DNA of 64,000 nucleotides, taken from Nageia nagi. Its lineage: Eukaryota > Plantae > Pinophyta. Position 1 is the first letter of the stretch; every line of letters starts with the position of its first letter. The stretch is taken from NCBI GenBank assembly GCA_050084985.1, contig JBITNC010000001.1:141918001-141982000 (forward strand), read 5' to 3'. Both the position numbers and the translations under genes were made by a program. A model generated the notes under the pieces. That model saw only the letters and a program-made list of their open reading frames with translations, made no database searches and was not told the DNA's origin. This document shows, in pieces, positions 8,596 through 57,400 of this stretch.

Positions 8596-10148
8596 TGTAA
8601 TGTTCCCATTTTTAGTTGTTTTTCCCATTTCACCTAGGATAAATGAGAATATTAATGTAGGAGTGTTTTTGTCAATATTTTTTATAATTTGACTAAAATG
8701 ATGTAAATTCCACTTAAAGACTCAACAAAGCTGTAATTATGGAATAAATGGCCCTTTTCTTTATTTATTTATTTTCCAAAATGCTAATTAATGATGTATT
8801 TGTGATACCAAGGAAACTATAGCTATAAATGCAATATTAATCTCATTAAATGAGGTATTACATATTCTAGCCTTGATGATTGTAATATTGATATTAAATG
8901 TATCTCTAGTCATTAGTGATCCCCTCTTCAAGGTAGCACATCCCCCTAGGTGATTGAATTGACTGTAAGGATATTTATAGCTCCATGGATAAACTTGACA
9001 CTGCAAACTAAGATTTTTCCATCTCAATGTAAGTAAATGATCTTAAAATATGGAAATTGAGCTTTAGAGGATCCCAAGATCCCATGTTAGCTACCTAGGC
9101 ACATGAACCGATGTCATTGATCACAAGGCACTCTGAAATAACCCTTCTTGTATGTTTATTTTTTTTGCCCTCAGATGTGATTACACTTATCCCAAGCCTT
9201 CTCATATTGGTCATTGCATACAAGAGAACACAAATCACATCTCTCCATCATTGGATCACCCCAAAGAAAGATTAGAAGATGATCATCCTCACATATAAAA
9301 GGAGAGCTCATAGCTATTATGAGATATACTAAATTTGATTATAAACCCTTTTATTCCATATTGAGTGGAGGCTCTATATTTGCCACTTGTGGGGTGACCC
9401 ACATTTGAGGTATTAGAGGGAGAGTAGGATAACTTCAAACTTTAGCCATATTGAGAGGAACATTGTTGGTTCCATCATAGTTACTATAAAGGAGACTTGG
9501 TATTGCCTCACTGCTTCTAGGATTTGTGAGGCCTTGTAGCCATCCAAAATAACCTAATAGGAGACAATCCTAGTACAAGCTCCATTTGTTGATACAAATA
9601 TTGTAATTGCTCTACTCTTTCTATATTAAATATAATTATATTCCATTATTGAAATATTGTTGTTTATCTCTCTATGGTTAGACATTGGATTTTGGAGTAA
9701 TTTTTGCATTATTTGAGTATCATTTGTGCTCCCAAATTGGGACATAGCATATGGGGTGAAGTTTGTGTTGTTTACTTGCTATTTTTTCTCTTGATTGGTA
9801 CATTGGAATACTTGGAGAATTTATTCTTGTTTGATGTATTCTTTCCTCCTAACTAGGATATTGCAATTGGAGAGGTATTTTGCATTGTTGAAGTTACTAA
9901 TTGCTCCATAATTGGGATGTTGGATCTGGAAGTGTATTTTCATTACTTAAGACCTATTTTTTCTTCTTTACATAGAATTTATATTTGTGTGTCAATTTTT
10001 GAAATATAATTGCAAAATTTATCAATCTTAGCTATACATTGGAATGCTTGTATAATTTTGGTCTTGCTTGGCTAGTTTTAAGGTTAGAATCCAAATGTCC
10101 CTCTCCCAAGGCATATTTGAGAAGTGAGCTCAGAAATGACTCATCATA
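8596..10148 (+). repeat. 5' LTR of E2
   Basis: Starts TGTAATGTTCCC and ends TCATCATA (decayed CA). Repeated at 13644-15119. Confidence 0.9.
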
Positions 10149-11240: not shown

Positions 11241-11930
11241 TTTTCTATATTCTAAGTGTCACTACTTATAATTATCAATTTATTTTCATCATTGAAGATA
11301 AGTATTGATAATCTACAAGGTTTTTCTAAACATATTGAACACTATTTTTTGGTGAATTCAAAGCTACACATCAAAGTTAGAAAATAAGGTAGTCAATTTG
11401 TTATTATTGACTAAAATTTGTAGTGGTGTCTACACCATGGAGGCTTGAGAAGGAGACATTGAGATTATTGTATTTCTATGATCAAAATTAGAGGTTAGAA
11501 GTGAGATGTTGGGAGTATAGGAAGATCTTTTTGCTAAGAGCTTGTATAAAACTCATCACTTGAGGTATCTTGTTCAATTTTCAAAAATTAGAACTTGCTT
11601 GGTATCATTTAGTTTGTGTGTGTGTGTGGATATTGAGCTTCAAGGAGGCATATTTGAATTTAGAGTTGTTTATTTTAGCCCATAATCCATAGGTTCAAAA
11701 TTTGCTATTTCATTCCATCATGGTGAGACCAAAATTCTAGGTTTGAGTATTGAGTAATTTGAGTATTTGAGCATTCCATATTTTATTATTTTCAAATAGG
11801 GAAAATAAGGGAAAAAGATAAAAAATATTTTATTCTAGTTTTTAGGTGTAATAAGGAAAGTTGAATCTCTTCCACTATATTTTTCATATTGGGAAAATAA
11901 ATTAAGCTTCAAGATAAGCTTTTACAATTC

Positions 11931-18900: not shown

Positions 18901-19078
18901 GGGGATTGGATTTGAACTTAGGAATCCATTTACAATAGTTGGGAGTTTCCACAACCAAGGTTCGCAGAGACTCCTAACATGTGGAGATGATCAATTTTAT
19001 ATTATTCACTAATAAATATTTGTATTAACACCATAAAGATTTATAATTTTATAAAAATAACTTGTACTTGATAATTAT

Positions 19079-20885
19079 GGTAGGGAGGGGGAGGGTCAAA
19101 GAATGGATAACACAAGGATTGAAATAGGCATGCTAAGCAAGGTGATGAATGCATATGATGCCATATCCCTAGTTGATTCTATAGCATTGCCATATATTAA
19201 TCTATGAAGGACCATTGATGTAGGGGACCTGTGTACAAAAATGATTGTTAAACACTCAAAGCCCAACATTTTTTCTATTAAACATTCAAGGTGGAGCATC
19301 TTTATTTTAAGTTATGTTTTCCAAATGATGAGCATCATGACTAGATAGGAATGCACTATGCCAGGAAATGGGGATGAGTTCAAAGAGGATCCTAATGTGT
19401 AATGGGGAAATTAGAGGCTTCATTAAGGCTCTTGACAAACATAACCAAAAATGGTCTATGTAGGTTTCTATCTCTTGGGATGAAGTCCAAGTGTCGGTGG
19501 ATGACCATCATTTTAGAATTAGTAAAGAATTGATCTCATAGGATACAAGGATGGTTAATGATGGGATCAAACACTATAGGGATATTTAGTTAACCATCAA
19601 GGAGGTCCAAAACTTCCTCAATCTAGGTGAAACTATCTCTAAGAGAAGGGTATTTGCTTATGTGATTTATTATATTCCATGCCCATGGAATGAAGTCACC
19701 AAGTCTTTGGTTAAACTCTTCACTCTGAAAGGAAAACACTTGAAGATTAGTGACTTTCATTTCCCCTTGCTGGCCTATTTTAGAGGAAAGTTGTAGGTAA
19801 ATTTTCCATATTTCTTATATCATTTGATGAATTCCTATATTTGTAGGAATAGGGGATGAATGCCGCTCCATTAGGGATTAATTAAAATTATAGTTTTCTT
19901 TGCTAGGGGTAGCGATGAATTATTCCTTTGTAAATGGTTCCTTTGAAGCCTTAAGTAGATGACTCTTATCATGTACAATAGTACCTAAATTCTCCCTCCC
20001 ATATTTTTCTCAAGAACATGTCAAATATGATAGCCCATCAAACCCAAGGAGAGTTGAAAAACTATCATAGGAGACTTGGCAAACACTAATTGAGATCTCT
20101 AATGAATCAGATGCCTTGGAGTTAGTAGATTCATACTAGGAGCCTTCCCAAATAATGTAGGAAAATATAACCTCAAAGTTTGTGGAGGAGAATATTCCTT
20201 TGGAGATAGCTAAGGAGACTTTTCCTACAATGGAGGAGCCTTTTTCTTTGAATATTGTAAAGGAAACTTCACCTATAGTGTAGGAATCTCTACTTATGGA
20301 TATGGAGAAGGAGCATTTTCCAATGGTAGAAGATGTATCGACATTGGAAATTTTAGTAGCTACAGCTAAAAGGTACTTGGGCCATCTCAACTAGAGGGGA
20401 TTAGCTCTGGTAGGAAAATGCCTTTTAAATTCTTCTTTGACATCATATACTAGGGGAACTTAGAAGAATGGGACAACATCAAGAGAATTAGAGTGGAAAT
20501 TTAGAATGATGAGTTCATGATAAAAAAGAAACAAGCTTAAGTCTTCGTAGCCATGTAGCATGAAAAAATCCTAGAAATAGTCCTAATTCACATAAAGGAG
20601 GGATTCATAAAAATAGATTTGGTTATATTTTGGTTCACATTTGAGGTGCAGAAGAAAGTTTCAAAGGTCCTTAAGAATCAAAATTTGAATAAACATGCAT
20701 TATTATAGGTGGTAGATCCTACAAAGGAGGAAGATGACTAATATGGCATGAGAAGCCATTATGTTTGACCCTTTTTGACCAAAATGTGTATCAAATGTCC
20801 ATATATTGAAAATCTAAATGAAAGATAGGTTTTGAGAGCCCTGTATAAATAATCCCCTTGAATAAATTTACCATTATAAAAAAAT
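19079..20885 (+). mobile_element. 5'-truncated non-LTR retrocopy (LINE 3' end) carrying the ORF3-like gene
   Basis: Perfect 17-bp direct repeat TTGTACTTGATAATTAT at 19062-19078 and 20886-20902. An AATAAA and a short A-run (20878-20884) precede the 3' copy. Confidence 0.8.
19325..20741 (+). pseudogene. Decayed ORF of unknown function, homologous to the LINE 3' ORF at 46150-48065
   Basis: FKEDPNV...GFIKAL...IPCPWNEVTKSLVKLFTLKGK...HFPLLAYFRGK..VNFPYFL...PLH*GLIKII, then a 16-aa acidic repeat and a K/E-rich tail. Confidence 0.7.
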
Positions 20886-21114
20886 TTGTACTTGATAATT
20901 ATAAGTTTAAATTTAATAATTTTCAATAAAAAATACTTAATTGTATTTGATGGCCTATTATTGGAATATTATTTTGTACATCTACAAGCCCTTGCAAAAG
21001 AGATCAAGTTCAAGAGATCGAAATCGAATTAGAGATAATAAGGCCTCTTTCTTTTCTCCATGCTATTGAAATAATGTGATATTATTTTTTAAAACATGAT
21101 TTAATGTTGGTTTT

Positions 21115-41881: not shown

Positions 41882-44800
41882 GATAATATTTTTGGTGGAT
41901 CCCATTGACTAGGATTGGTAGCTCCTAAAGTTCAAAATGTTTTATTAGCTTGAATACATTATTTTGCATAGCACAAGTAATCACATAGGGCCCATACCAA
42001 TAGGAATCAATTTTTTGGTATTTTTTGGGTTTTACTCTATCTTCATCCCATTCCAATACAAGGTCACCAACTTTAAAAGACATCTAGGATGATTTCTTCT
42101 TATCAAACCACTTATTTACTAACTTTTATATGTGTTGAAATGGTTTATAATTATTCTCCCAATATTCTTCTAACTATAATAGCTAATTAAACCATACTTG
42201 AAATGGCTTCAAATTTGGATCCTCTAATTATTTTAATAGTTGTATGGAAGGAAACTCCAAATAGATAGGTAATGCAATTCCTCTACCATATACTAGTGCA
42301 TAAGGGGATGTTTTGATTGCAACCTTCATACTAATTCTATCTTCCCATAGTGCTAGATACAACTTATTATGCTATTACCTTTGATTTACTTCTATAATCC
42401 TTTTGACAATCCTTATGAGATTCTTGTTAGTGTATTTACCTAGACCATTTCCTTGAAGATAATAATTTGAATATGCTCTCCAATATATGCCACATTGAGA
42501 TACAAATTCTAAAATAATTTCTCCTAAAAAGGTTGGGCCATTATCTGAGATAATTATTTAAGGAATTTTGAATCTAGTAATCAGTCTCTACAATAAACTT
42601 ATCATATATTATTGATCAACATTTTTACATGGCATTTCCTTAGCCTGTCTTGTAAAATAATGTGTAGTTATGAGGATGAATTTCTATTTGATAGAAGAAT
42701 TTGGGTTGATGATCGTAATGAAATGTATTCCCTTTTTCTTAAATGGTTCTTCCATAACTATTGGGTTCAAAGGTATTGTTACCTTTCTTATTCTACCAAC
42801 AAATCTATTGCATTTTTCACATTCTTAGGAGACCTTGAATGAATATTGAAATATAGTCATCCAGTAATAGCCAGCTTGCAAAATATTTGTAGTTATTATC
42901 TATCCAAATAAATAACCTCTAGAAAATCCATAGTAAAATTCATGTAATATTCTTTGAGATTCATCCTAAGAAACACATATCAATAGGGTACCATCAAAGT
43001 TTTTTTAATACTAGTCATCTATCATCATATAATTTAGTTCTTGAAATTTAAATATCCTTTCTAGTGATTTTTCCATAGTTTTTAGGCATTTACTAATTCT
43101 AATTAGATACATAATTATCTAATCCAATTAGTTTATAAGTTTTATTGTAGCATAGATTCTTCAATGATTACCATAACTTGGGCATCCATAGCTATGTTTT
43201 CACATAGATATCTTCCATTGACCAATGTGGTTGGCTTAATTTCAACATCAAATACTAAAATTCTAGTAGTCCATCCAGTTTTTCCTTATTCTAGTTCTCC
43301 TTGTATTATATAGCTTCTAACATCATAGTGAATAGGATACACAAAGATCTTACTTTGAGTTACATAAATTTAAATTTCTCAAGACTCTTTATAATCATAA
43401 AGACTTATTTTTGTATAATTATTTACCTTTTTTAGTGTTCATGCAGTATTTGGTTATGAAAATAAATAGGATATTTTTCTTGCTTATCATCCTTCTTTTC
43501 AAGTACTATTGCTAATATTTTGTTAGCGTCATATGCATACATGATGAAATCCTTAAAAAATCTAGATTCTTCAATACTGGTGCTTTGATAATAGCCTTCA
43601 TAATGTTATGAAAAGCTTATTTTTATTCTTTAGACCAAAAGAATCATACATCTTTCTTTAACATTACATTGATAGGTGCAATAATTCCTAAGAAGTCACT
43701 TATGAACTTTCTAGAAAAATTGATTTATTGTAAAAATGATTGCAGAGATTTCTTATTATATGGCAAAGGAATTTTTTCTATTGCTTTAATCCTTCTTTAG
43801 ATATAACATGCCCTAGCAATTTTCTTTGATTTAAATCAAAATTAACTTTTTTGGATTTATTGATATCCTATAGTATTTGCTTTTTTCAAATATGTTCCAG
43901 AGATGATCAACATGATCACTTTGAGATTTAGAGAACACAACATGATATCATATAAATAAACTAAATTAATTTTTCTTATCAACTCACCAAATGCATGATC
44001 CATTGCTCTTTAGAAAATTGCTCCAACATTAAATAGTTCAAATGATATTATTTGAAAGGAAAAATTACCCATTTGGTGGTAAATGTTATTTTGTATTAAT
44101 CTTCATCTTTGATGAATATCTTATTGAAACTATAAAATCAATCAATCATTGAAAATCAACATGCTCCAGAAACTATTTACAAGATTTATTCCATAGTAGT
44201 AAGAGGATAATTATCTTTGAGAGATATTTGATTTAGATTTTGAAAATCAACACATAGTCTAATTTCTCTATTCTTCTTCCTGATTGGGACCAAATTAGCA
44301 ACCCAAGTTGAATGCTTGATTGGATAAATGATTTTTCATCAAGCAACTTTAAAAGTTCCTATTTCATAGCTATTTCTATCTTTATGTTAATTGGTCTTTT
44401 CTTTTTCATGTATGGTTTAGAACCTATAACTAGTCCTATTATATGTTGAACGAAATTTTTTTCATAGGTATTAAGATCATCATATTTCCATGCAATAATT
44501 TCAATAAATTATTTCCATAATTGTAGTACTAAATATTATTTTTTATATGTACATTCTAAACCAATTTTGATTCTCTTTCTAGTACCAATCTTCTTTGTGG
44601 GATTGCTTTTATAAGGGTAATATTATTGCTATGTATAAGTCATCCAAGTAAAATACGATTTCAAAAGATATCAACCCTTTAGGAATGAAATTATTTTTGA
44701 GCTAGATAATATCTAACTCTTAGAAGTATTCTAGAAAATCTTGATCTCTAACCATATGATTCATAGTTTCATTAATAATAAAGTTGAGGACTTGGTTATT

Positions 44801-45800
44801 AGAGTCAAAAACTTGCTAATAATTTTCCATGTCTACTATTGAAGGTTTGTTAATTACCTTGACTCCTCTAGCACATCTGATATAGTGAGGATGATTAAAT
44901 ATTTCCCCTTTTCTAGCTAAAATATAAATAATTTGATTATACTTCATAAGAATAGCTATGAAGTTTAAAGCAATAAAGGATTCCATTAAATCCCATACTC
45001 TATTCCTATAGGAATTGAGGTAATGATGCTTTACACTACATTTGTTTATGACTTGTTTGATTATAAGTTCAAAATCATCATATATTTATAAACATCTTAT
45101 TCCCATTTTGGTAGCTTGATTCATTCCAAGGTAAATATCTTCGTATTTTGTTGCATTATTAATGCAAGCCCAAGTCACTCTATAAGAAAATATTTTATAA
45201 CCTCCTTTGGGATTTTTAAACACTATACTAGCTCCAAGTCCATACTTACATCTTGCACCATCAAAATACAAACTCCAAATCTTTTTCTCTTTTTCCTGAT
45301 ATATAGAAATAATTTGATATTTTTCATGAAAATAATAGTTTCCAATCATAGCATCAGTCATTATGTAGCTAATATCCTTAGGGGAAATAATTTCAATAGT
45401 AATTAAAGCTTCCCTGACTAAATCTACTTGGATAATTTCTATAGTATCTGACACATTCATTGAGTTGTTCTCATGTATTCTTTTATGGTGAATAAGGGTT
45501 GTTAATTAGGAATATTGAATCTATTATTTTCAAATGGGATCTCTAAATGTGTATAATCTAGATATAGGAATCCTCCTAGTTTGGCAATGATATTTATAGA
45601 AAAATAGAGGCTAAATAGAGGAGGTAAATCCACAACAATGATATCCTAAGGGATTGAGATTTGGGAAATATGATTTCAATCCATATTCTTTTATTTAACA
45701 TATTCAACCATATCTACATGTATTGAGTCCAGCTACAAGACACCTTCTTCACACCTAGTATAATACAAGTTCATTTCTTTAGCTATGGCTTTAGGCATTA
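41882..45800 (-). pseudogene. pol of the Tat-type element: protease C-terminus, archaeal-type RNase H, RT, RNase H, integrase
   Basis: aRH WSLYFDGA...NNATKYE at about 44900-45290. RT WVANLVPIRKKNREIRLCVDF..LN..KDNYPL at about 43750-44400. Integrase IISDNGPTF, YLQGNGL, WYGPYVI, ending LVNGIHQKYY. Confidence 0.92.
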
Positions 45801-46149
45801 CTATTTTTTTTATTAGAACTAGCGAGAAAATTTTATATTAATCAAAAAATAAAACCAAGTTTTTAAAGGACATCAAAAACCTTTTACATATAAAATAAAT
45901 AACTGTCAAAGAGTTTACCCTGATCATAAACAAAAAGAGTATCGAAGTAATCAACAACAAAATTATTTGAGGTACATATTATATAGACCAAGAGAGATAG
46001 AATTATGAAATAGCTATTAGTTTGTCAGGTCCTCAAAAAGTTGATTGAAAATAAAATAAAGTTATGTGTGTAAATAATCTTAATCCCACTATTCATGGTT
46101 AGCTAAATAACCCTTTAGAAAAAATGAAGCTCATTCCCTTGATAGCTAT

Positions 46150-48065
46150 GGGTGGTGTAAATATAGGAGTAAGCCTAATATTTTTCTTTCTAATTTTGTA
46201 TATTGAAAATCATCCTTGATTTGTAGTGCATCCGACATGTGGTTTTATCTTCTAGAGTGGCATAACCTTGAAATATATCCTTTTATTAAACTTGGGCCTA
46301 ACATTCTATCAGACTCTATTGAAGGTCTAATACCAGTAGTTTCAAGTTCTCCTATCATTAGGATGAAAGATATCCTTGACAAATTTCATCTTTAGCTTTT
46401 AATAGTTATTTTTTATAGAACTTGATGTAGATATTTCTCCACATTTTCCTATTATGAATCAACCACTTATTCAAAGCTTCTATTCCATGCATGTAGTGGT
46501 AAATGGGTAGGGATTCAAAAAGAAAATTAGGGCTTCCTCTATATCTCTTTGCTTCCCCAAGCATACTGTTATGAATGTAAATATTCTCATACAATATGAT
46601 AGCTTGGAGTTGGAATTTCTTGGACTTATTAGGAGTTGATTAGTAAGGTTTTTCCTTATGAATTATGTTTTAAGGAGATGGGATACTTGGTTCTTGGTTG
46701 ATACAAGGGTAGGTGATATATAGGATAATCTCTCCTATCAAACTATGCACATCCTAATCTATATTAACATCAAAGCCCCTAAACTCATCAACAATGGGCA
46801 AAAATTGAGTAGAATATTTCCTTTTAACCCTTTTAGAATAAGTATACAACTTAGTTTCAATGGGATGCTAATGCAAATAGGTAGGGGTATTAGTATTGGT
46901 TTCATTATCCATGGGGATTGGAATAGAAGTGTTAAATTCTCCAAAATTTTGACTAGATTGACCCTATTTAGTAGTAGGGCTATCATTGACAAGAATGGGG
47001 GTGGGGACCAACTTACCTTTGCCTTTGTATATCATGGCCATTGATTAGGTCCTTCTTCTAGTAACTATTTGAAACCTTCTTTCTTCATTTTGGGGGTAAT
47101 TTTTATGTTCTTGTTTGGCCTTTAAGTCTATATTTTCCTACATCACCTCTTGAGTCCCTTCCTCTACATGGATAACTTGAGGGTATGGTTGTCTATGCCT
47201 GAGCCATCGAAATTAGATTAGGCCTTCATCCTTATCTTTTTCACTTTGAGGGCATTTATTTTGAGGGCCTATATTACACACATTAACTTCATTTTATTGT
47301 TGCTATATTTGGATCTGAGCGATGTCCTCTTGATTTTGTTCCAAAATGGGCTTTCATGCATGCCTTCAGTCCTAGCCCTAGTTCATCACCAATCTAGTTC
47401 ATCTTGTTGAATTTGTTTTTGAGGGGCTTGATCTCTAATTTGAGGCTACTATTGCACATATTAGGCTAGTTTATGCTGGTATACCAAGAGCATAACCCAT
47501 TGATATAGGGAAAATAATTAAGTTTAACTCTACACTTAGCTACTAAAACTCCCATAGAAAATTTGATGAATTGGGAAAAATTAAATTGATCTCTCTATGG
47601 TTTGAAGTGATTCATTAGTATAATATGGGTTCTAAATACCTCAATATACCTTCCATCCAACATAATATACTTCATAATGATTTTGAAAACCTTATGCCAA
47701 GGGTAAGGGATTCTTCTTCTATGGAACCTAGTTCTATAGGGGATTAACTCAAAGTTACATCCTTCAAATCTTCTTATTTCCTCTATTTTGCTAGTCTTTG
47801 AGTTTTGGTACACTTCCTTATCCTTGTTAGGCAAACCAATGGATTTCATAATTGTATCCCTATTGAAGATAATTTCCTTCCCATGAATTCTATAGACACC
47901 ATCCTCCTAGGTGCTAATGAGATAGTCTACCATCCTTCTTTTTGCTCCCCTACATGCCTTAATAAAAGTGTTTAAAACCCCCTTGCATATGATTCTCCAA
48001 ACATTAGGGTCTTTTTTAGCTTTGGTTGGGTCATTTAGCTCCATGAAAACTAGGGCACCTCCCAT
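46150..48065 (-). pseudogene. Putative LINE ORF3 (unknown function); 3' boundary approximate
   Basis: MGGALVFMELNDPTKAKKDPNVWRIICKGVLNTFIKAC...IGLPNKD...IPYPWHKVFKIIMKYIMLDGRY...HIILMNHFK. Starts just after ORF2 on the same strand. Confidence 0.7.
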
Positions 48066-48169
48066 AATTCCTAACATCATATTGGATTGTGCTCTATAGA
48101 AGTTAGGTGGAAAAATGGTGATAATTCACTTAAGTCAATGCTTGTGCTTAATAGTCATATCAAACATGT

Positions 48170-51100
48170 GATTTGTTATCTTTTTGTACCCAAATCCATG
48201 ATGATCTATAATCTCTCACTTTCTCCATTTTTTCAAATTTATGGGAGCATCATTACTATCATTAATCTATTTTTCCCTATGATTGCCTTTCCTAATATGA
48301 TTTTCTTGATTATAATTAGACTTTGTATTATAAATATTCTAGGAGTCTTTAGTTTCTATATCCATTATAAAATGATAGATATTAAGTTAAAATTTATGGC
48401 ATTTGTTGGATTTCAAAGTGTTATTTCATGTTCTCCAATAATCTTTAAGTGCTAATCCTGAAAACCTCTTTTGGTTTATTTTGTTGATCTTTGAAAATTC
48501 TTTTATTTCTTTGTTTCCAAATTTTCCACCACATATGGCCAAGAAGCATTAGCCAACATTTTTCATAACCTTTTGCTCTTGTGTGGTCTGACCATTGCAG
48601 TATGCATTATTTGACATCCTTCGGTAGGACCCATTATATCTTCATTTCTTTACATAGCATATCCTATATACTCCTTGAATAATTATAATGAAGAAATATA
48701 TCTTCTATATCTTCATCTTCCTCTTTACAAAGTTCACACCTATTTGTCATATTAAACCCCCTTTTTTTAAAGTTGTCAAAGGTCAACAATCTATTTTTTA
48801 GGCAATTTTTGGTGTAATTTTTGCTTTCCAAATTTTATTCTAGACATCTTCCTCTTTTTTGTTTTCATGATTTTTTGTTAATAGGCCTATAGCTTCTTTG
48901 AATTTGTATTTCCTATCCAATCTAATCTTCCAATTAGGTTTAACTTTTTCCATAGTAATCTAGAAATTAGATTCATTAGCTTCTTTTCTAGATCTCTAAG
49001 CTAATTTGCTACTTTTCCTCTGTGGGGTATATGAATGGTCCATTTATTTGTGTGAGAATAAAAATATTTATCTATTTTATCTCCTTGGTGTTTTAAGTCC
49101 CATTTCACTCCTTATTTGTACTTTATCATATTTATAAGAAGGTTTTCTTTCATCTAAATATCCTCTCACATATATACATGGGTTCCATCTCTTAGATTCC
49201 ACTTTATAGCCCTTTGAACATCTAATCTAGCTATGATGATCCCATTATAGAATGGGGAAATATAGGATGGATTTTAGATTCTGAGCACTATATCTTGACC
49301 CATCATATACTTTTATTTATATATATGTATCTACTCCTCATCTTGTGCTATCTGCCAGACCAATTTGTCTCTTAAAGATTGAATAACATGCTTCATTTTC
49401 CTCATACCAAGGCATCCCTTTCCATTTTCCATACAAATAATATTTCAATTTACCAAAGTTATTTTCCTTTTTTCCTCATCTCCTAACCATAATAATCTAT
49501 TACAAATTCTATCAATCTTATCACAAATGTTTATAAGTAATTTGAATACCATAGCATTATACATTGGGATGCTTTGTAGAACTATTTTAATAAGAATGAG
49601 TTTTCCTACATAGGTTAGGCATTTTTCCTTCCAAATTGTAAGTTTGTTTTGAACTTTTTGAACAAGGGTGTCCCAATAATGAGATTTGAGTTTCCCAACA
49701 TACAAAGGCATGCCTAAATATCTTATTGGGAGTTCACCTACTTAGCAACTCCAAACTCTAGTTACTTGTTTCTTAATTAACTCATAGAAATTTAGTATAT
49801 AAAATTTAGTTTTTTGAATGTTTCTTTTTTATTAGAAGCTCTCTCATAAAGATTTAGGATTTTCTTAAACTTAATAACTTCTTCTCTCTAATCTCTCCCA
49901 ATAAAAAATGTATAATCAACAAATTGATAATGTGTCATTGTAGTACAGTTACAAATAAGGAGAACACCTTTTATTTCATTACTTTGATAGGATTCTTTAA
50001 TATTCCTACCCAAGGCTTCAACCATAATGATAAATAAGTAAGGTGATAGGGGATCCTCTTGCTTGAGTCCTCTTTGGGAACTAAAATAGCCAATCACTTC
50101 TCCATTTATGATAATAAAAAATGTAGGAGATGAGATACATTTTGTGATCCAGCTTCTCCATATGTTTCTAAAGCTAAATTTTGTCAAAACCATATTCAAA
50201 AAAGTCCATCTTACTCTATCATATGCTTTTTCCATATCAATGTTAACTACCATGGTGGGGTTTTTCTTCTTGTGGACCAAATGAAGAACCTTGTGCATAT
50301 AAATTATACCATATTTGATTTGTCTCCCTTAACAAATACATCATGTTCATTAGATATTATATGGTCCATAATTGGTTTTAGTATTTTAGCAATTACTTTG
50401 GTTATTATCTTATAGACCAGATTGCAAAGGCTTACAGGTCTATAATCTTTAAAATCCTTTGCTTCCTAGGTTTTAGGAATTAAGGTTAAGAATGTGTTAT
50501 TCAATTATTGTAGGAGTTTTCCTCTTTTGAAGAACTCTTTTATAGCATACTAGACATCTTTTTCCACTATCTCCAATTGTTTTGGAAAAAAATAGCCAAA
50601 AAGCCATTTGGTCTTGGAGTTTTATTAGGTTCCATAATGAAAATCACCTTTTTGACTTCTTATATAGGTTGTTTCTATAGAGCTTTATTTTGTTGATCAA
50701 TAATAAGTCTTAGAATATTTTGGAAAAAAATTTCCCTATTTTTGGGATTATTCCTTTGATCAATTGTAAGTATACCTTCATAGAAAGTAACTACTTCCTC
50801 TTTTATATCTTATTCTTCTATTTCCATGGTACCATCTATTCTCTTGATTGTATTTATCCTATTATAACTTCTGCATCTAAGGGTGGTTATTTTGGATAAC
50901 TTTGTATTTTTATCACCTTGTTTAAGCCAAACCACTAGATTTTTGCCTCTAAAATGGTTCTTCCTAAGACACAATATTGTAGTAGTCATCTAGCACTAGC
51001 CTCTCCTCTTTATAGGTTAGCCATTCTACCTATCTATATAATCTCATTTTCAATTTCTTCTTTCTTCTCTTTTCATATGATTTTTCTTTTAAAATGTTTA

Positions 51101-51984
51101 ATTTTTTTTAACTTTATTAGGTTCTTCTTAACTTCATCTAGTTTTTTAACAATCTTTAACATTATTGTGCCAACAATCTTGATCTCACAATATGAGAGGC
51201 TATTTTTGAACCCCATGAGACATCCGCATATTTTCAAATTTGAAGGGGGATTTTTTCTTATTACATTTATCCATTATCAACTCTATAGGTATATGATCTG
51301 AGGAAATTCTTGAGAGGGAGTTCAGGATAGAATTTAGGTGCTAATCTAGCTAGTCTTGCATAGTTGCCATTCTATCTAGTCTCCTTAATTTGGATAAAAC
51401 ATTTACCTATTCTTCTACTGGTCCATGTGTATTTATTACCTTTTAGATTAAGGTCTATTAGTTCATTCCCATCCAAAAACTTTCTTCAGCTCTCCATGTT
51501 GGTATTCATATTTATTCCTACCCCATATTTATCTTCTAAATTTAGAGGGGTACTAAAATCTCCCCCAATCAACCAAGGCATATTTTAAAATCTATTTCGA
51601 TGATTTGATGAAAGATTTTAAAACTATTTTCTCCTAGATATAATGTTAGGAGCATATATATTAGAAATGACAAAACTAAAGTTTGTGGAATTACATTTTA
51701 TCTTCATTTATAAGCATCTATTTGAATGGAAAAGAATCCTTTCTACTTCCATATTCACTAGGTCCCACATAATCCATATACTACCCAACTTTCCAACTAC
51801 AGGAATAGCTTCATACTTCACTTCCTTTCATATCCTAGTAACTAGCTTCCTTATTTTTTTCCCTAATTTTGATTTCTTGGATTAGAAGAATATGAGGTTT
51901 CTTATCCCTCCTTAGGTCCCTAGCAATCTTTTGTTTCTTAGGAAGATTGCATCCTCGGATATTCCAACATATGATGTTCATCAT
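48170..51984 (-). pseudogene. LINE ORF2 (APE endonuclease, reverse transcriptase, zf-RVT)
   Basis: MMNIICWNIRGCN, NIYAPN, WLIGGDF, DYRPVSLCN, IDMEKAYDRV.W, RGLKQEDPLSPYLF, QFVDYT, YLGMPL, NRCELCK. Confidence 0.95.
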
Positions 51985-52554
51985 TTTCATTTTCCTCCTC
52001 CACTCTACTCATGAGTGTTTTTCATTTATTTTCCTTTTTTCTTGGTAGATTGGGGTCTTTTTTTTCCATCCTTTGCGAGGTTGCCTATTATTCTCTTTAA
52101 CTTTATATCTTTTATGGTTTGGGGTATTTTTTATTTTTGGTATTTCCTCTTTTTTTTTTCTCTAACCTTCCACTTTAACATCTATTCCATGACATTATTC
52201 ATCCTCTTCTTCTTCTAAAACTTCATCATTCCCCTCATGTGCTTCATTTTCTTCAAAATTATTTCATCTAATTCCTCTCCTTTTAGGTCTATTCTTTGTA
52301 TTAGTATATCTTTATTTCCAATTATCTCATTTGTACCAATGATACCCTCTTCCTCATTGACTTTTATCTTAGATTCAGTTTCTTCTACTTGAAATGGAAT
52401 TATTTATTCTCTTTTATATAATTTTATGTAAAACATCAAACCTATTACCTTTTAGAGGTACTTCTTCATTTTATAAATCTTTCTGTTCATTCATTACCAT
52501 CTCCACTATTGGTTTATCAATGGCTAGTCTTGTGTTCTCTTTTTTCATTCCTTG

Positions 52555-54460
52555 TTTAGGCATTATAGTGCTAGTATCCTTGATATTTATTAGAAAAATA
52601 TGAACAATCCATCCTTAAAATTTAAGATAAATATAGAATGGAGGAGGTTTAACAAAACCTATAGGGGCTGGTGGAGGCAGTTCTACATTAAGAACATGGC
52701 ATTATTGGCAAAATATTTTCTTTTTCTATTCTTCATCCTTAATGCTTCTTGTTAAAAGTACATTTAACCAAGAATTCTTAATGCATAAAAAATAGAAATA
52801 TTTATTAGAGTTCATTTTAATTATTCCATAATATTGTAATATACAAAAAGATTTGACACACGAAGATTTGGTGCATTATTTCCCTTGTATTACTGAGTAG
52901 CTCTTTGTATTTATTTTTCAATGATAAATGGATATATAAGCATATCAAGCTTATCCCTTTACTGCTCAGGAAATTTTGAAGTAAGAGTTTTCTTTTTAGT
53001 AGGAGGTGCTTGGATTTTGAAATCTTGATTTCTAGGTGCTACTAACTTTTACAATATAGGATCTTTTTTTAGGATTTGTGATATCTTCTCCAATAGTTGT
53101 TGGACTTTACCTGGTGCTTGTTGTTGAATTAAAATTGGAATGTTAGCTATTTGTGTTTGTTGTGGTGTTAAAATTTAATCCTTTTAGCATTAAAATTACT
53201 TTTTTAGTAGTAGTAGTAGTAGTAGCTTGTGAGGTACCAATATCATATATGTAGATGCTCTTGTATTTACAATTATTGTTTGATTAGTAGAGACCATGGG
53301 TACTTGCAAATTCATCATTGTTATGTTTGATATTGGATCAGTAGGAGTATATGATTATTCTATAATTGGATGATATTCCATCATTTGATCATAATAAATC
53401 CCTAGATTTTGATGCTAATAAACTATGCATAAATTAGGTGAATGAGGATTAGCACAAGGAGGACACCATTGATTCATTCCAGATGGTCCATCTTCATTAG
53501 TGAATAATGATAACATAACCATGTTAGTAGATGGAGAGGCTTTATCATTAGAAGTTTGATATTGAGGGTATTTTCTTGGAAATATGTAATTATGCCTCTT
53601 ATATGTAGGATTCTTGTTCTATCTTTATGCTAGATTCAGCTAATTGGTTAGATTTCTTATGTTCATCTCAAGTTGCCTAATCCTCTCTTAAACTTGAGAT
53701 TTGCTATTTATATTTTTTATAAGAGGAGTAGGTAATATGAGTGGTTAAGACTAATAAAGGGATTTAGGATTTAATGTTAATTCTCTAGGATTAGGATTTA
53801 AAACTTTAGAATTCTTTTAGGGTAAATTAGAGAAATGAGATATTACACCCCTAGGAAGTAGCTTTCCACTAGCCACAAGAATCTCTTAAGCTCTTTTAGA
53901 AAATTCATATGCTCCTAGAATATTCTATGTTGATATAGTAATTTTCAAAGCTATATTTGGATGAAATTTTTTTTATGAAATATATGAGAGAATGATAAGC
54001 ATTCGATCTAATTCTTGTAGGAATTCTTTTCTAGATTTTTTTAAATCTTTAGTTGAAATCATCTATAGTTTCTTGATGATGTACTTTAATAGTAATGAAA
54101 TGATTACATAGAGAGAACTTATCTCAATCTTATTAAAAATTACTATCTAGAGCTTTACATAGGTATACCCTCATGTTTATAGACTAAGGAGGCAAAGTCC
54201 TAAACTATTCAATAACTTTATCAATAAATGAGAAATATTAAAGCCTCATCATGATCATGTAGTCATCAATATCTAGAGTGCTAGCAAGGAAGCCTACATC
54301 CTATCAATGTTAATAAGGATTTTTTCTATTTCCATCATACTTAAGAAGTAATTTCATGGCTTTTTAAGGGACTTTAAGTGATCTAGTAGGTATAGCTAAT
54401 GGACTCACATCATTCCAATCCAAAATAACATTTTGGACATTAGCTTTTCAATGAGCCATA
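52555..54460 (-). pseudogene. gag and protease N-terminus of the Tat-type element
   Basis: KLLLKYDG-type gag start, WCPPCANPHSPNLC zinc knuckle near 53425-53470, and KPPPFYIYLKF...TSTIMPK protease start at about 52556-52650. Confidence 0.8.
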
Positions 54461-57400
54461 CTAAGAATAGGAGGAGAAAATGCACTTTTAAGTGGAAAAA
54501 CTCTCAAAAAATATCTACTGTATGAAATAGGATTATATCTCCTCTTATCCCTTCTTAAAAGAATTAGAAGTTCTAAGAACCTAGGCTACTAAGTGTTTCT
54601 AGTGGTATTTCTAGTAAGTCTGGGCTATGGAGGTTTCAAGGTTCACCTAAATGACTTATTTTGATACTAGAGTTGTAAAAAAGGTTTTAAAATTATCTAA
54701 TAAAAGTATTATAGCGTAAGGATGACTTTAATTGACTAGCTTTTAATAGCTAAAATCACCAAAAACATGCTTATGTTCAATTGGAATAAATGATCCCATT
54801 AAGCATCATAAAAATAAAGGAACTATTATTGATCACAAAAGTATAAATTGGTGATCCTACTGAATCCAATATCCATTCCATAATTTAGAAAGTGGTTTTT
54901 GAATGAAAAAGGATGATAGGATAGTGCACTTTTGAATTAATATCCCTACTCAATCTCTAGAATAGATTAGCTCCTTATAGTATGGAGGTAAAAAGTACAT
55001 GAACAAGATAAAAAAGAGCAACTATAGATATGAAAATAGTAAATACTAACTTAAAGGATCTAAAAATTCAAATGCTACAAAGGAAATAATACAAAATAAA
55101 ATAAATTTATCAAGGTCAAGAACTATTGGATTAGGTTGTATTCCATAACTAAAATCTATGAACAACAAGTTGGCCCAGACTTAGGCTCCCACAATTGCAT
55201 CACAAAGTCACAAACATAATGACATGCATTTATAAATCCAAAGTTAACAAATAAAATAGCCATAAGTGTAAGAGGGAAAATAGATTCTATTAGCTTTAAA
55301 ATAAGAAGATGTGTACCTACAAAAGGGTAACAATGCTCAAAGTTTAACCCTTTTACTATCTATTTATAGTTATTTATAGAAAATTTTACAATATGGGGAG
55401 ATAAGCCTCCATGACTCCTACATAAGTATAAGAATTTAATGTCTATATGACTATCTATAATATTTTGTAATCAACTATTGTTTGTATTTATTCTTAGGTG
55501 GTTGTTGGATCTGTGAATTATTCCAATAATTTCTTCATGAAGAAGATGGTTATAGACCTTTTGTAGTAATTGTTTGAAATTTCTTCATTTGGATTTTATC
55601 TGTATTTAGTCATTCCAAATGATTTGTGAAATAGGTACTTGTTGTATTCTACTTATACCATGTTTCAATCTTCTTGGCTTTGCAATTACAACATTAACTA
55701 TTTTTGGTTCATTGATGTATACAACTTTGTTATTTGTTTTGATAACAATTCTTAGGTGAAAAGATCGATCTATAATGTATATATCTTGGTGTAGTCAAGT
55801 TTCTATTTCATGGTAAAATATGTGTTATATTAACCCATTGTCATAGGTATAGGGGTTCCACATTTATATTGGATAAATGTAAGTATTGGCATGAATGTGT
55901 AGTGCCTCATGATAGTTGTTTTCTTTCTCTAGGTGTTATGCACTAGTACCCTTTAAGGCTTCTAAGTTTGGGAGATTCTAGCTACTAGATAGTCATTAAT
56001 TTTTAAAAATCCTTGGGATTTATTTATTGTTGATTCTATCATTTAGGTTCCTAGTATTTTACATTTGGGATATATTAGGTCATAAAAATTCTTTGGGTTC
56101 TATTATCTATTATTATTTACCTATAGAATCTGAGACTTTTAAATACAGGGATAATAACTCTTTGGCAAAACTTCCCTAATTCTAAAATCCAATGCTAGTC
56201 AATCACCACCTTTGGTCTTATAGGGTACATAGGATTGAGGGTATTTATATTTGGTGATAAAATTATCAAGAAAAATTCCCTCGACTCTAGCTGCATGTTA
56301 TACTTAATAATATTTTGAGATATAGTTAATAGCTTCCAAAAAGGTTCCTAGGTTCTTGAAGATACTAAGTATTTATAACTTAATGAACACAAAAATATAT
56401 AAGTGAGGGAAGAAAAGATACGATAAATAAAATAGGAATAGGACTTAGCAAAATTTGGAAGGGAAAAATAGTTACCCTTACAAAAATGTTGTGAAACACA
56501 ACATAAACTTATGTTACTAACCACATGTTAATATTAGGAACCTAGAAAACATCTCATAGATTCATTTCTTTTATTAAAACTTTCTTGTTTTACAAATACG
56601 AGATTATCTATATATCAATAAAGTTATTAGCTTACCTTCACAAAGGTGAGTATATTTGAATATTAATTAAACTTATTTCTTTTGATATTATTTAAACCTT
56701 ATAATCATACAAAAACATTTATAGAATATTATATATTCAAATCATTTCATTTAACAACCAATTTATAGATATTAAAAGGAACAAATAGGTCAAGATAAGG
56801 ATGAAAAATATGGTCCATGATACACTTCCCTTATTTTCTTAAATACAATCTCATATGTTTGAACAATAAATAGATTAGGAAATTATTGTTTCATGGTGTC
56901 CATATCCTCTCAAGTGGAATTATTTTTTGAATATTGGTCCCATTGAATCTTTCACTATTCTATTTTATAATTTCTAGGCATATTTGTATAAGTTCTCATA
57001 ATTATTATAGGTTTAACTTCAACAAACAAAAGATCTATCAACTATAATTTTTTGACATCCTAGATATGTGAGGGATCAGGTAGATATTTCTTTAGGAGTG
57101 ACACATGGAAAACATTAGGAATATTTGCTAGGCTAGATGGAATATCAAGATGATAAGTAATAGGATTCATATTTTTAATAATAGATAAAGGTACAACAAA
57201 TATTGCTACTAATTTAGAAGATTTGATTGAACTCTTATGAGGCCTAACCCTAAAAAAAGCTTTATCCCCGATAGTGAACTACTTAGGAGTTGTCTTGATA
57301 TATGTTATAATTTTTTGTCCATCAAAATCTTCCTTGAACTTCTTTTGAATATTCTTAAGATGATATTCTATTACTCAAATTTAGGCTCAATGATTACTTT

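Follow-up and report, generated by a model that had tools for sequence, protein, structure and literature searches.

The window, a 64,000-nucleotide stretch of Nageia nagi DNA, carries at 45801-52554 on the minus strand an insertion in which a decayed L1-type ORF2 and a further open reading frame downstream of it, designated ORF3, lie within one pair of target-site duplications (TSDs) together with a poly(A) tail. ORF2 occupies 48445-52008, ends in a TAA stop at 48445-48447 and was assigned using Pfam and its translations, with matches to RVT_1 at 49891-50328 (E 3e-15), zf-RVT at 48667-48834 (E 4e-9) and Exo_endo_phos at 51838-52008 (E 0.011, below the curated cut-off in this decayed sequence). 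The upstream element therefore has the features of the plant L1 clade, namely an APE-type endonuclease, a reverse transcriptase (RT) and a C-terminal zf-RVT in ORF2, and it is bounded by poly(A) and TSD (an A8 tail and an 11-bp duplication). Upstream of ORF2, a K/E-rich, 5'-truncated remnant on the same strand (52012-52554) returned no Pfam match and is, from its translation, probably the end of the L1 ORF1. The 11-mer TTTAGGCATTA (plus strand) lies both at 52555-52565, some 550 nt upstream of ORF2, and at 45790-45800 on the 3' side, where the element terminates at 45801-45811 with ...CTAAT, A8 (45804-45811) and TAG; a degenerate version of a 3' terminal motif described below (GTAAAAGGTTT...CCTTT...AAC) lies at 45859-45887. 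Between the ORF2 stop and the ORF3 start codon is a spacer of 379 nt (48066-48444), in which neither a poly(A) remnant nor a duplication nor a second copy of the 3' tail motif was found. Searches of the rest of the window at the DNA and protein levels detected no paralogue of the L1 or of the whole element. The window has a GC content of 0.30 and a CpG observed/expected ratio of 0.05-0.06, and all of its coding sequences are riddled with stops.

The 11-bp duplication is suggestive but falls short of proof, since in approximately 3.6% of empirical trials on this window an 11-mer taken at a fixed point had a second occurrence at a distance of 4-9 kb. The flanks of the insertion were examined by motif reading. 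Beyond the 3' TSD, from 45789, the sequence can be read as the C-terminal portion of a gypsy-like RT (...RCEEGVL.LDSIHVDMVEY...DIIVVDLPPL), and this segment of the interrupted host element is followed by an RNase H-like domain at 45505-44819. Just before the 5' TSD, the translation ...IFF, two stops, ISRILAL, one stop and CL fits the F-x-DD...S...CL stretch that precedes this part in such RTs. Both flanks consist of co-oriented retroelement pol sequence. Continuity of the host RT across the insertion rests on this motif reading, as Pfam and tblastn returned no match on the short decayed pieces. The TSD, the bare spacer and the host RT-like flanks together lead us to conclude, as far as the sequence can be read, that 45801-52554 entered the pol gene of an LTR retroelement as a single piece. 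An explanation in which the 11-bp duplication is a coincidence, and the L1 and the unit carrying ORF3 arrived as two adjacent but separate insertions, could appeal to the empirical chance of approximately 0.036 and to a competing match of 8-9 bp, CATTACTA(T) at 45796/48251, which would bound the unit alone and give it a 185-nt leader. However, the L1 3' UTR and poly(A) should then follow the unit, and what follows instead is host RT-like coding sequence from 45789; the L1/ORF3 junction also lacks a poly(A) and a TSD, and the pol sequence on the two sides is co-oriented. We regard two insertions as extremely improbable. The 45796/48251 match was rejected as a TSD for the unit alone because the host RT-like sequence resumes at 45789; if that motif reading is right, no room is left for the remainder of an L1 3' UTR.

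ORF3 starts with ATGGGAGG at 48065, 379 nt past the ORF2 stop and in a different frame. Its translation reads MGGALVFMELNDPTKAKKDPNVW..., interrupted by in-frame stops at 47907-9 and 47595-7 but free of frameshifts as far as about 47469, so that about 200 codons are readable before the frame decays into K/E-rich low-complexity sequence. The N-terminal globular domain, delimited with a profile hidden Markov model (HMM) and assigned from its relatives to a VANC21-like fold family, occupies 47460-48065 on the minus strand; the decayed continuation (46409-47459, minus strand) translates as a low-complexity K/E-rich linker with several frameshifts and an uncertain end. A second copy is present on the plus strand at 19079-20885 as a stand-alone unit without RT, flanked by a perfect 17-bp TSD (TTGTACTTGATAATTAT, at 19062-19078 and 20886-20902). 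This copy has a 279-nt leader, an ATG at 19358 (MPGNGDEFKEDPNV...), the domain at 19395-19910, the 3' motif at 20827-20859 and an A7 tract at 20878-20884. Both copies retain the degenerate tail motif and a ...C[CT]xTAAT-poly(A) terminus. Aligned directly by tblastn, the two copies share 26% identity (E 0.003), and their kinship becomes certain because both match the family HMM built from 38 members, the first with E 1.9e-56 (47993-47460) and the second with E 6.8e-40 (19395-19910); no third match was found in the window. The motifs DPNV, FIKA, IPxPWxxV, KxxxLxG and HxxLxxxF are present in both copies, and NFxxF was seen in the first copy and in family members. An HMM of the C-terminal helix of Ginkgo-type members (see below) matched neither window copy, and TRF detected no arrays in either. 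The initial annotation, made from the sequence alone, is thus upheld in its description of the locus: it had placed this stretch inside the same TSD/poly(A)-bounded insertion as the L1 ORF2, had read it as opening with MGG and encoding a globular-looking domain followed by low-complexity K/E-rich sequence, and had identified 19079-20885 as an independent insertion encoding a homologous protein with these motifs in common.

Relatives were collected by an exhaustive phmmer search with the 103-residue piece encoded at 47598-47906, which returned 40 representatives, two of them spurious repeat proteins; the remaining 38 were used to build the family HMM. The named matches are Ginkgo biloba gene models, and word-indexed searches with Ginkgo members extended the family to more than 60 Ginkgo gene models, typically of 330-450 residues. 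Pfam domains were found in these models only where they are fused to unrelated host genes (PPR, RuBisCO large subunit, 2OG oxygenase and TIR). The ORF itself matched no Pfam family when all window pieces, ten long relatives and 51 members were searched, and the family profile matched no PDB sequence, VANC21 included. An alignment-based word search added nothing further, and scans of viral and prokaryotic contigs were negative. Full-length members begin MGGDPVTTEP... and share a conserved core (...LPxPWxxV...MKYxTLEGxF...YHxxLLNHF...NxPxFL...PLHQGL), followed by a linker of serine, acidic and basic residues and then by a helix pair (...LKxLNxLGGSL...INLLTLEIxNYLKEV...). The closest relatives of the window copy (P0003, P0007 and P0008) are encoded on contigs of 4-8 kb. 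None of about 100 family proteins includes an RT part or aligns to the window L1.

The genomic form of the relatives was determined from a scan of metagenome contigs, which gave 12 loci with plant DNA; because two loci were sampled twice (as L001/L002 and as L003/L004), there are six independent Ginkgo-type loci. The family 3' tail (GTAAAAGG...CCCCTTCTACCTTAAT) is nearly invariant among these: all six end with GTAAAAGGTTTGGGGACCTTTCAACACCCCTT, after which five continue TC[TA]AC[CT][TA]TAAT and then poly(A), the sixth (L008) diverging past CCCCTT and having no clear poly(A). Between subfamilies, similarity covers the ORF and approximately 220 nt of 3' UTR and ends near the ATG; leaders of different subfamilies could not be aligned, and leaders are inherited within sub-subfamilies. 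Clear boundaries were obtained for three relatives, namely the second window copy, L006 (a 15-bp TSD bounding a 1.6-kb unit) and L004 (a 14-bp TSD with one mismatch). They measure 1.5-1.8 kb, and their leaders are 279, 250 and 299 nt long, respectively; in lacking an RT and having a TSD, a poly(A) and a defined 5' end they have the make-up of non-autonomous, L1-dependent retroposons. L007 appears to be 5'-truncated inside the ORF, and for L002 only a weak 8-bp candidate duplication was found, which would give a leader of about 316 nt. An apparent 16-bp TSD at L008 was rejected, as it belongs to a local repeat. With the window L1 as the query, no L1 ORF2 was found upstream of the ORF in any of five loci (L002, L004, L006, L007 and L008; 1.3-10 kb of upstream sequence), a small sample with none from the genome of the window. 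Most relatives thus travel alone and not as the third gene of a LINE, and the only LINE seen to carry the family 3' tail is the composite at 45801-52554 itself. RNA structure in the 3' motif was unconvincing, with an RNAalifold energy of -1.8 kcal/mol and single-sequence z-scores of -1.1 to +0.8.

Among five Ginkgo-type ORFs, two (L002 and L004) are intact and the others have one, two and six stops; none of the five has a frameshift. Synonymous sites are saturated (pS 0.74-0.9) against a pN of 0.18-0.37, and constraint is stronger in the N-terminal domain and the C-terminal helix than in the linker. The family is under strong purifying selection, in agreement with the initial annotation, which had taken the ORF for a real and conserved one and had named dN/dS as a check. 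The low pN and near-invariant tail, set against saturated synonymous sites, indicate that protein and tail are kept by selection in replicating lineages and hence that the copies are not ordinary dead-on-arrival pseudogenes. This bears on the idea that they are processed pseudogenes of a host gene family, for example of a MAIN-like chromatin factor, which would account for TSDs, poly(A) and intronless single ORFs and for their annotation as genes in Ginkgo. Such an origin is very improbable in our view: the copies number in the dozens, are 40-70% identical and each have a TSD and a tail of their own; the 3' terminus stays near-invariant despite saturated synonymous sites; diverged retrocopies retain intact ORFs; and one copy is joined to an L1.

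A structural model of the family member P0049 was calculated using AlphaFold2 with a 51-sequence alignment. The model has pLDDT values above 90 for residues 10-200, a disordered linker (226-333) and a helical hairpin (338-390). In a Foldseek search against the PDB, the sole match below E 1 was VANC21 in complex with its target DNA (9lnj_A; E 7e-3, probability 1.0), and, of 48,161 representative chains compared with the globular domain (model residues 5-201) by VIA-align, VANC21 ranked highest (Z 7.5, rmsd 4.6, 186 residues). A second model was made for P0012, a member about 30% identical, from a different alignment. With this model, VANC21 was the only chain above Z 5 in VIA (Z 7.7, 187 residues; next chain 3.9); its Foldseek match was weak (E 1.2) but had by far the highest TM-score (0.38). 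The globular domain is accordingly predicted to have the fold of the VANC21 DNA-binding region. The Z-scores are middling in absolute terms, and the match carries weight because it was replicated, covers the full domain and is separated by a gap from the next match. By sequence, no window piece, relative or any of the 51 members matched DUF1985 (PF09331), and none of the 51 matched PMD (PF10536), Transposase_32 (PF20167) or ATHILA (PF03078) at E values up to 5. Language-model neighbours of a window piece and of P0049 were Transposase_32 and ATHILA ORF-1 clusters (0.85-0.91), which are taken as leads only.

Accessory proteins of the VANC, PMD and Athila kinds are known from MULEs and LTR retrotransposons, and among plant transposon proteins VANC alone has, to our knowledge, been shown to reverse DNA methylation on its own family. 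As an anti-silencing factor, VANC causes sequence-specific loss of DNA methylation on its own VANDAL family (PMC5735166). It is structurally homologous to the PMD protein MAIN, is, like the Athila domain, predicted to oligomerise via coiled coils, and has been described as dicot-specific (PMC13547354). Tat LTR retrotransposons, among them those of one gymnosperm lineage, have been reported to carry extra ORFs that combine PMD and coiled coil (PMC4408406). The present family resembles VANC21 of the Arabidopsis VANDAL21/Hiun MULE (PDB 9lnj/9lnk) in being a transposon-borne accessory protein with the same predicted fold over about 186 residues, in its layout of globular domain and helical tail and in the fast divergence of related copies. 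It differs in having no detectable sequence similarity to VANC21 and no DUF1985 match, and in its carrier, which is a poly(A) retroposon or L1 in gymnosperm hosts rather than a MULE; DNA binding and hypomethylation are in this case putative. With PMD-CC and Tr28-CC of Tat Ty3/gypsy elements, Athila and Transposase_32 (PF20167), the family has in common the capture of an accessory domain, often combined with a coiled coil (PMC4408406), whereas those ORFs reside in LTR retrotransposons and have no Pfam-level link to the present one. Fold and layout thus place the protein among the accessory proteins that plant transposons have repeatedly captured.

Judging from the models, the most likely role of the protein is sequence-specific nucleic-acid binding in the service of the element, which is the best-supported mechanism, and counteraction of silencing by DNA methylation is the leading candidate function. 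The initial annotation had guessed at an accessory or anti-silencing role and had suggested a fold comparison; with VANC21 as the top match for both models, that guess gains unexpected structural support from a predicted fold. The main alternative, which leaves the history of the elements aside and concerns function, is an ORF1p-like protein that would bind RNA, oligomerise, package the RNA of its own unit and recruit the L1 ORF2p. Being the sole ORF of the short units would suit such a protein, whose RNA target might be the conserved 3' tail, and a nucleic-acid-binding fold with a C-terminal hairpin recalls, by analogy, the coiled coil and RNA-binding layout of L1 ORF1p. Against it, the sole structural relative binds double-stranded DNA (9lnj/9lnk), the protein has neither an RRM nor a zinc knuckle, and the composite L1 seems to possess an ORF1 remnant of its own upstream of ORF2. 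RNA packaging is on these grounds an unlikely function, though one to be taken seriously.

The L1-linked copy is either the autonomous form of the family or a one-off chimera. The initial annotation had reasoned from two diverged copies to a heritable ORF3 of a LINE. That step does not hold, because the second window copy, L004 and L006 are RT-less, TSD-bounded units with discrete leaders. Its broader proposal of a tricistronic LINE lineage survives in part: the window does contain a single insertion with ORF2 and ORF3, but the ORF lies behind an L1 ORF2 in none of the five other loci, and no RT part occurs among about 100 family proteins. Within the sample reached, homologues therefore lie behind L1s only sporadically, a pattern that the initial annotation itself had named as counting against its proposal. 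We nevertheless put forward a modified version, in which an old gymnosperm retroposon module, whose ORF of about 390-550 codons is preceded by a leader of about 250-300 nt and followed by the conserved 3' terminal motif and poly(A), would be copied by L1-type target-primed reverse transcription, the hallmarks of which, TSD and poly(A), are borne by the bounded copies. Its protein would comprise the N-terminal VANC21-like globular domain of about 200 residues, a disordered acidic/basic linker and, in Ginkgo-type members, a C-terminal helical hairpin. At 45801-52554 the module forms the 3' end of a 5'-truncated L1 and was co-inserted with ORF2 in one event. The short units would be RT-less derivatives: their transcription would begin at a putative internal site a short way upstream of the ORF, and the common 3' tail would allow them to be mobilised in trans, in the way that SINEs exploit the tail of a partner LINE.

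That the composite is a heritable, autonomous form, and the far commoner short units its derivatives, is the account we favour, at somewhat less than an even chance. In its favour, the composite went in as one piece, the L1 part has no tail of its own and the junction leaves ORF2 whole. Moreover, for a family without RT to stay under selection across deep divergence, a stable autonomous partner bearing the family's tail is required, and no candidate other than the composite was seen; conserved tails held in common with SINEs are known from plant L1 lineages (PMC3747384). Against it stands the single L1-linked copy, every other bounded copy being short with a discrete leader; this pattern suits independent short elements at least as well and would seldom arise by random 5' truncation alone. 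It is accordingly quite possible, if a little less probable, that the short units are self-propagating, non-autonomous, protein-coding retroposons following a HAL1-like logic (HAL1-type elements are RT-less derivatives of LINEs) and that the L1-linked copy is a one-off chimera. Such a chimera could have formed by template switching of the RT from the 5' end of the unit RNA onto L1 RNA, or by read-through of an L1 with a unit in its 3' UTR. That three TSD-bounded units of very different subfamilies each have a discrete leader (250-299 nt; about 316 nt in L002, weakly supported), that leaders are inherited within sub-subfamilies, and that neither an upstream ORF2 in the five loci nor an RT fusion was found all agree with solo propagation. 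However, a whole ORF2 with a same-orientation junction no more than about 100-200 nt past its stop would be expected in only a few percent of chimeras if junctions were random, and the stable same-tail LINE partner that a selected RT-less family needs has been seen in no form without the ORF. Readings other than a heritable composite or a one-off chimera are improbable even when taken jointly.

Among known systems, the arrangement is closest to pairs of SINEs and LINEs with a shared tail and to HAL1. The short units are likewise RT-less and bear a TSD and poly(A), and they share a conserved 3' terminus with the single L1-linked copy; some plant L1 lineages, of the stringent type, have a conserved 3' tail in common with SINEs (PMC3747384). 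The units described here differ from these systems in encoding a large protein that is neither ORF1p nor ORF2p; further differences are that no stable stem-loop was demonstrable in the tail and that no partner L1 without the ORF was found.

The full proposal, of a gymnosperm L1 lineage with a VANC-like, sequence-specific anti-silencing third cistron that also spawns abundant RT-less solo-ORF retrocopies via an internal start and a shared 3' tail, is rather unlikely as a whole. If true, it would be the first report of an anti-silencing gene in a non-LTR retrotransposon, and the third cistron might help retroelements to persist in giant genomes with heavy methylation; in the part of the literature covered, an ORF3 of plant LINEs was nowhere described. 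More generally, a VANC fold in elements copied by LINEs would extend the anti-silencing strategy to non-LTR retroelements and to gymnosperms. The predicted fold is conserved by selection across a deep gymnosperm divergence, and the CpG observed/expected ratio of the window is about 0.05. A concrete protein of about 200 residues is available together with candidate targets, namely the leader, the linker repeats and the 3' tail. Finally, the more than 60 Ginkgo 'genes' of the family, several of which have been fused with PPR, RuBisCO or oxygenase models, represent retroposon cargo and are due for re-annotation.

The decayed minus-strand L1 element (45801-52554) interrupts the pol region of an LTR retroelement of gypsy-like type, which is likewise decayed and on the minus strand and lies at 52566-54600 and 43400-45789 of the window. 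Gag-like and RT N-terminal motifs lie upstream of the L1 (within 52566-54600), and the RT C-terminal part lies downstream of it (within 43400-45789), together with an RNase H-like domain at 45505-44819 (RVT_3, E 0.046). This domain is followed by a second RT start at 44508-43400, suggesting that an additional nested or duplicated element is present downstream of the L1. With a GC content of 0.30, the whole window has a CpG observed/expected ratio of 0.05-0.06, indicative of extreme C-to-T decay driven by methylation; the depletion was equal in the L1, its ORF3 part (starting at 48065) and copy 2, the RT-less plus-strand unit at 19079-20885 encoding an ORF3 homologue.

The linker of copy 2 contains a degenerate 24/48-nt tandem array (20138-20326) with the nucleotide pattern AGGAGxCTTTTCC...ATGG, each unit encoding approximately 8 residues (KExFPxME). 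The targets of VANC, the VANDAL transposon anti-silencing DNA-binding protein, are in many cases tandem repeats, and by analogy the array is therefore a candidate binding array, although it may equally be merely a coding repeat.

An ATGGG(A/T)GG start context (Met-Gly-Gly) is conserved in nearly all subfamilies (window 48056-48070 and 19350-19375; metagenome-contig loci L001-L012). This start departs from the canonical N-myristoylation motif.

At L009, a long inverted repeat with arms of approximately 60 nt each (positions 1-230) immediately precedes the ORF copy. The Ginkgo-type unit of L008 sits inside a local repeat family (AAATGGGCCAAAAAGG...; 9000-9400 and 11395-11440) that mimics a target-site duplication. 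In five Ginkgo gene models (P0094, P0096, P0092, P0081 and P0098) the retroposon ORF is fused to unrelated sequence, the partners being PPR repeats, RuBisCO large subunit, 2OG oxygenase, a TIR domain and a hAT-like tail; these models are probably annotation chimeras arising from unmasked retroposon cargo.
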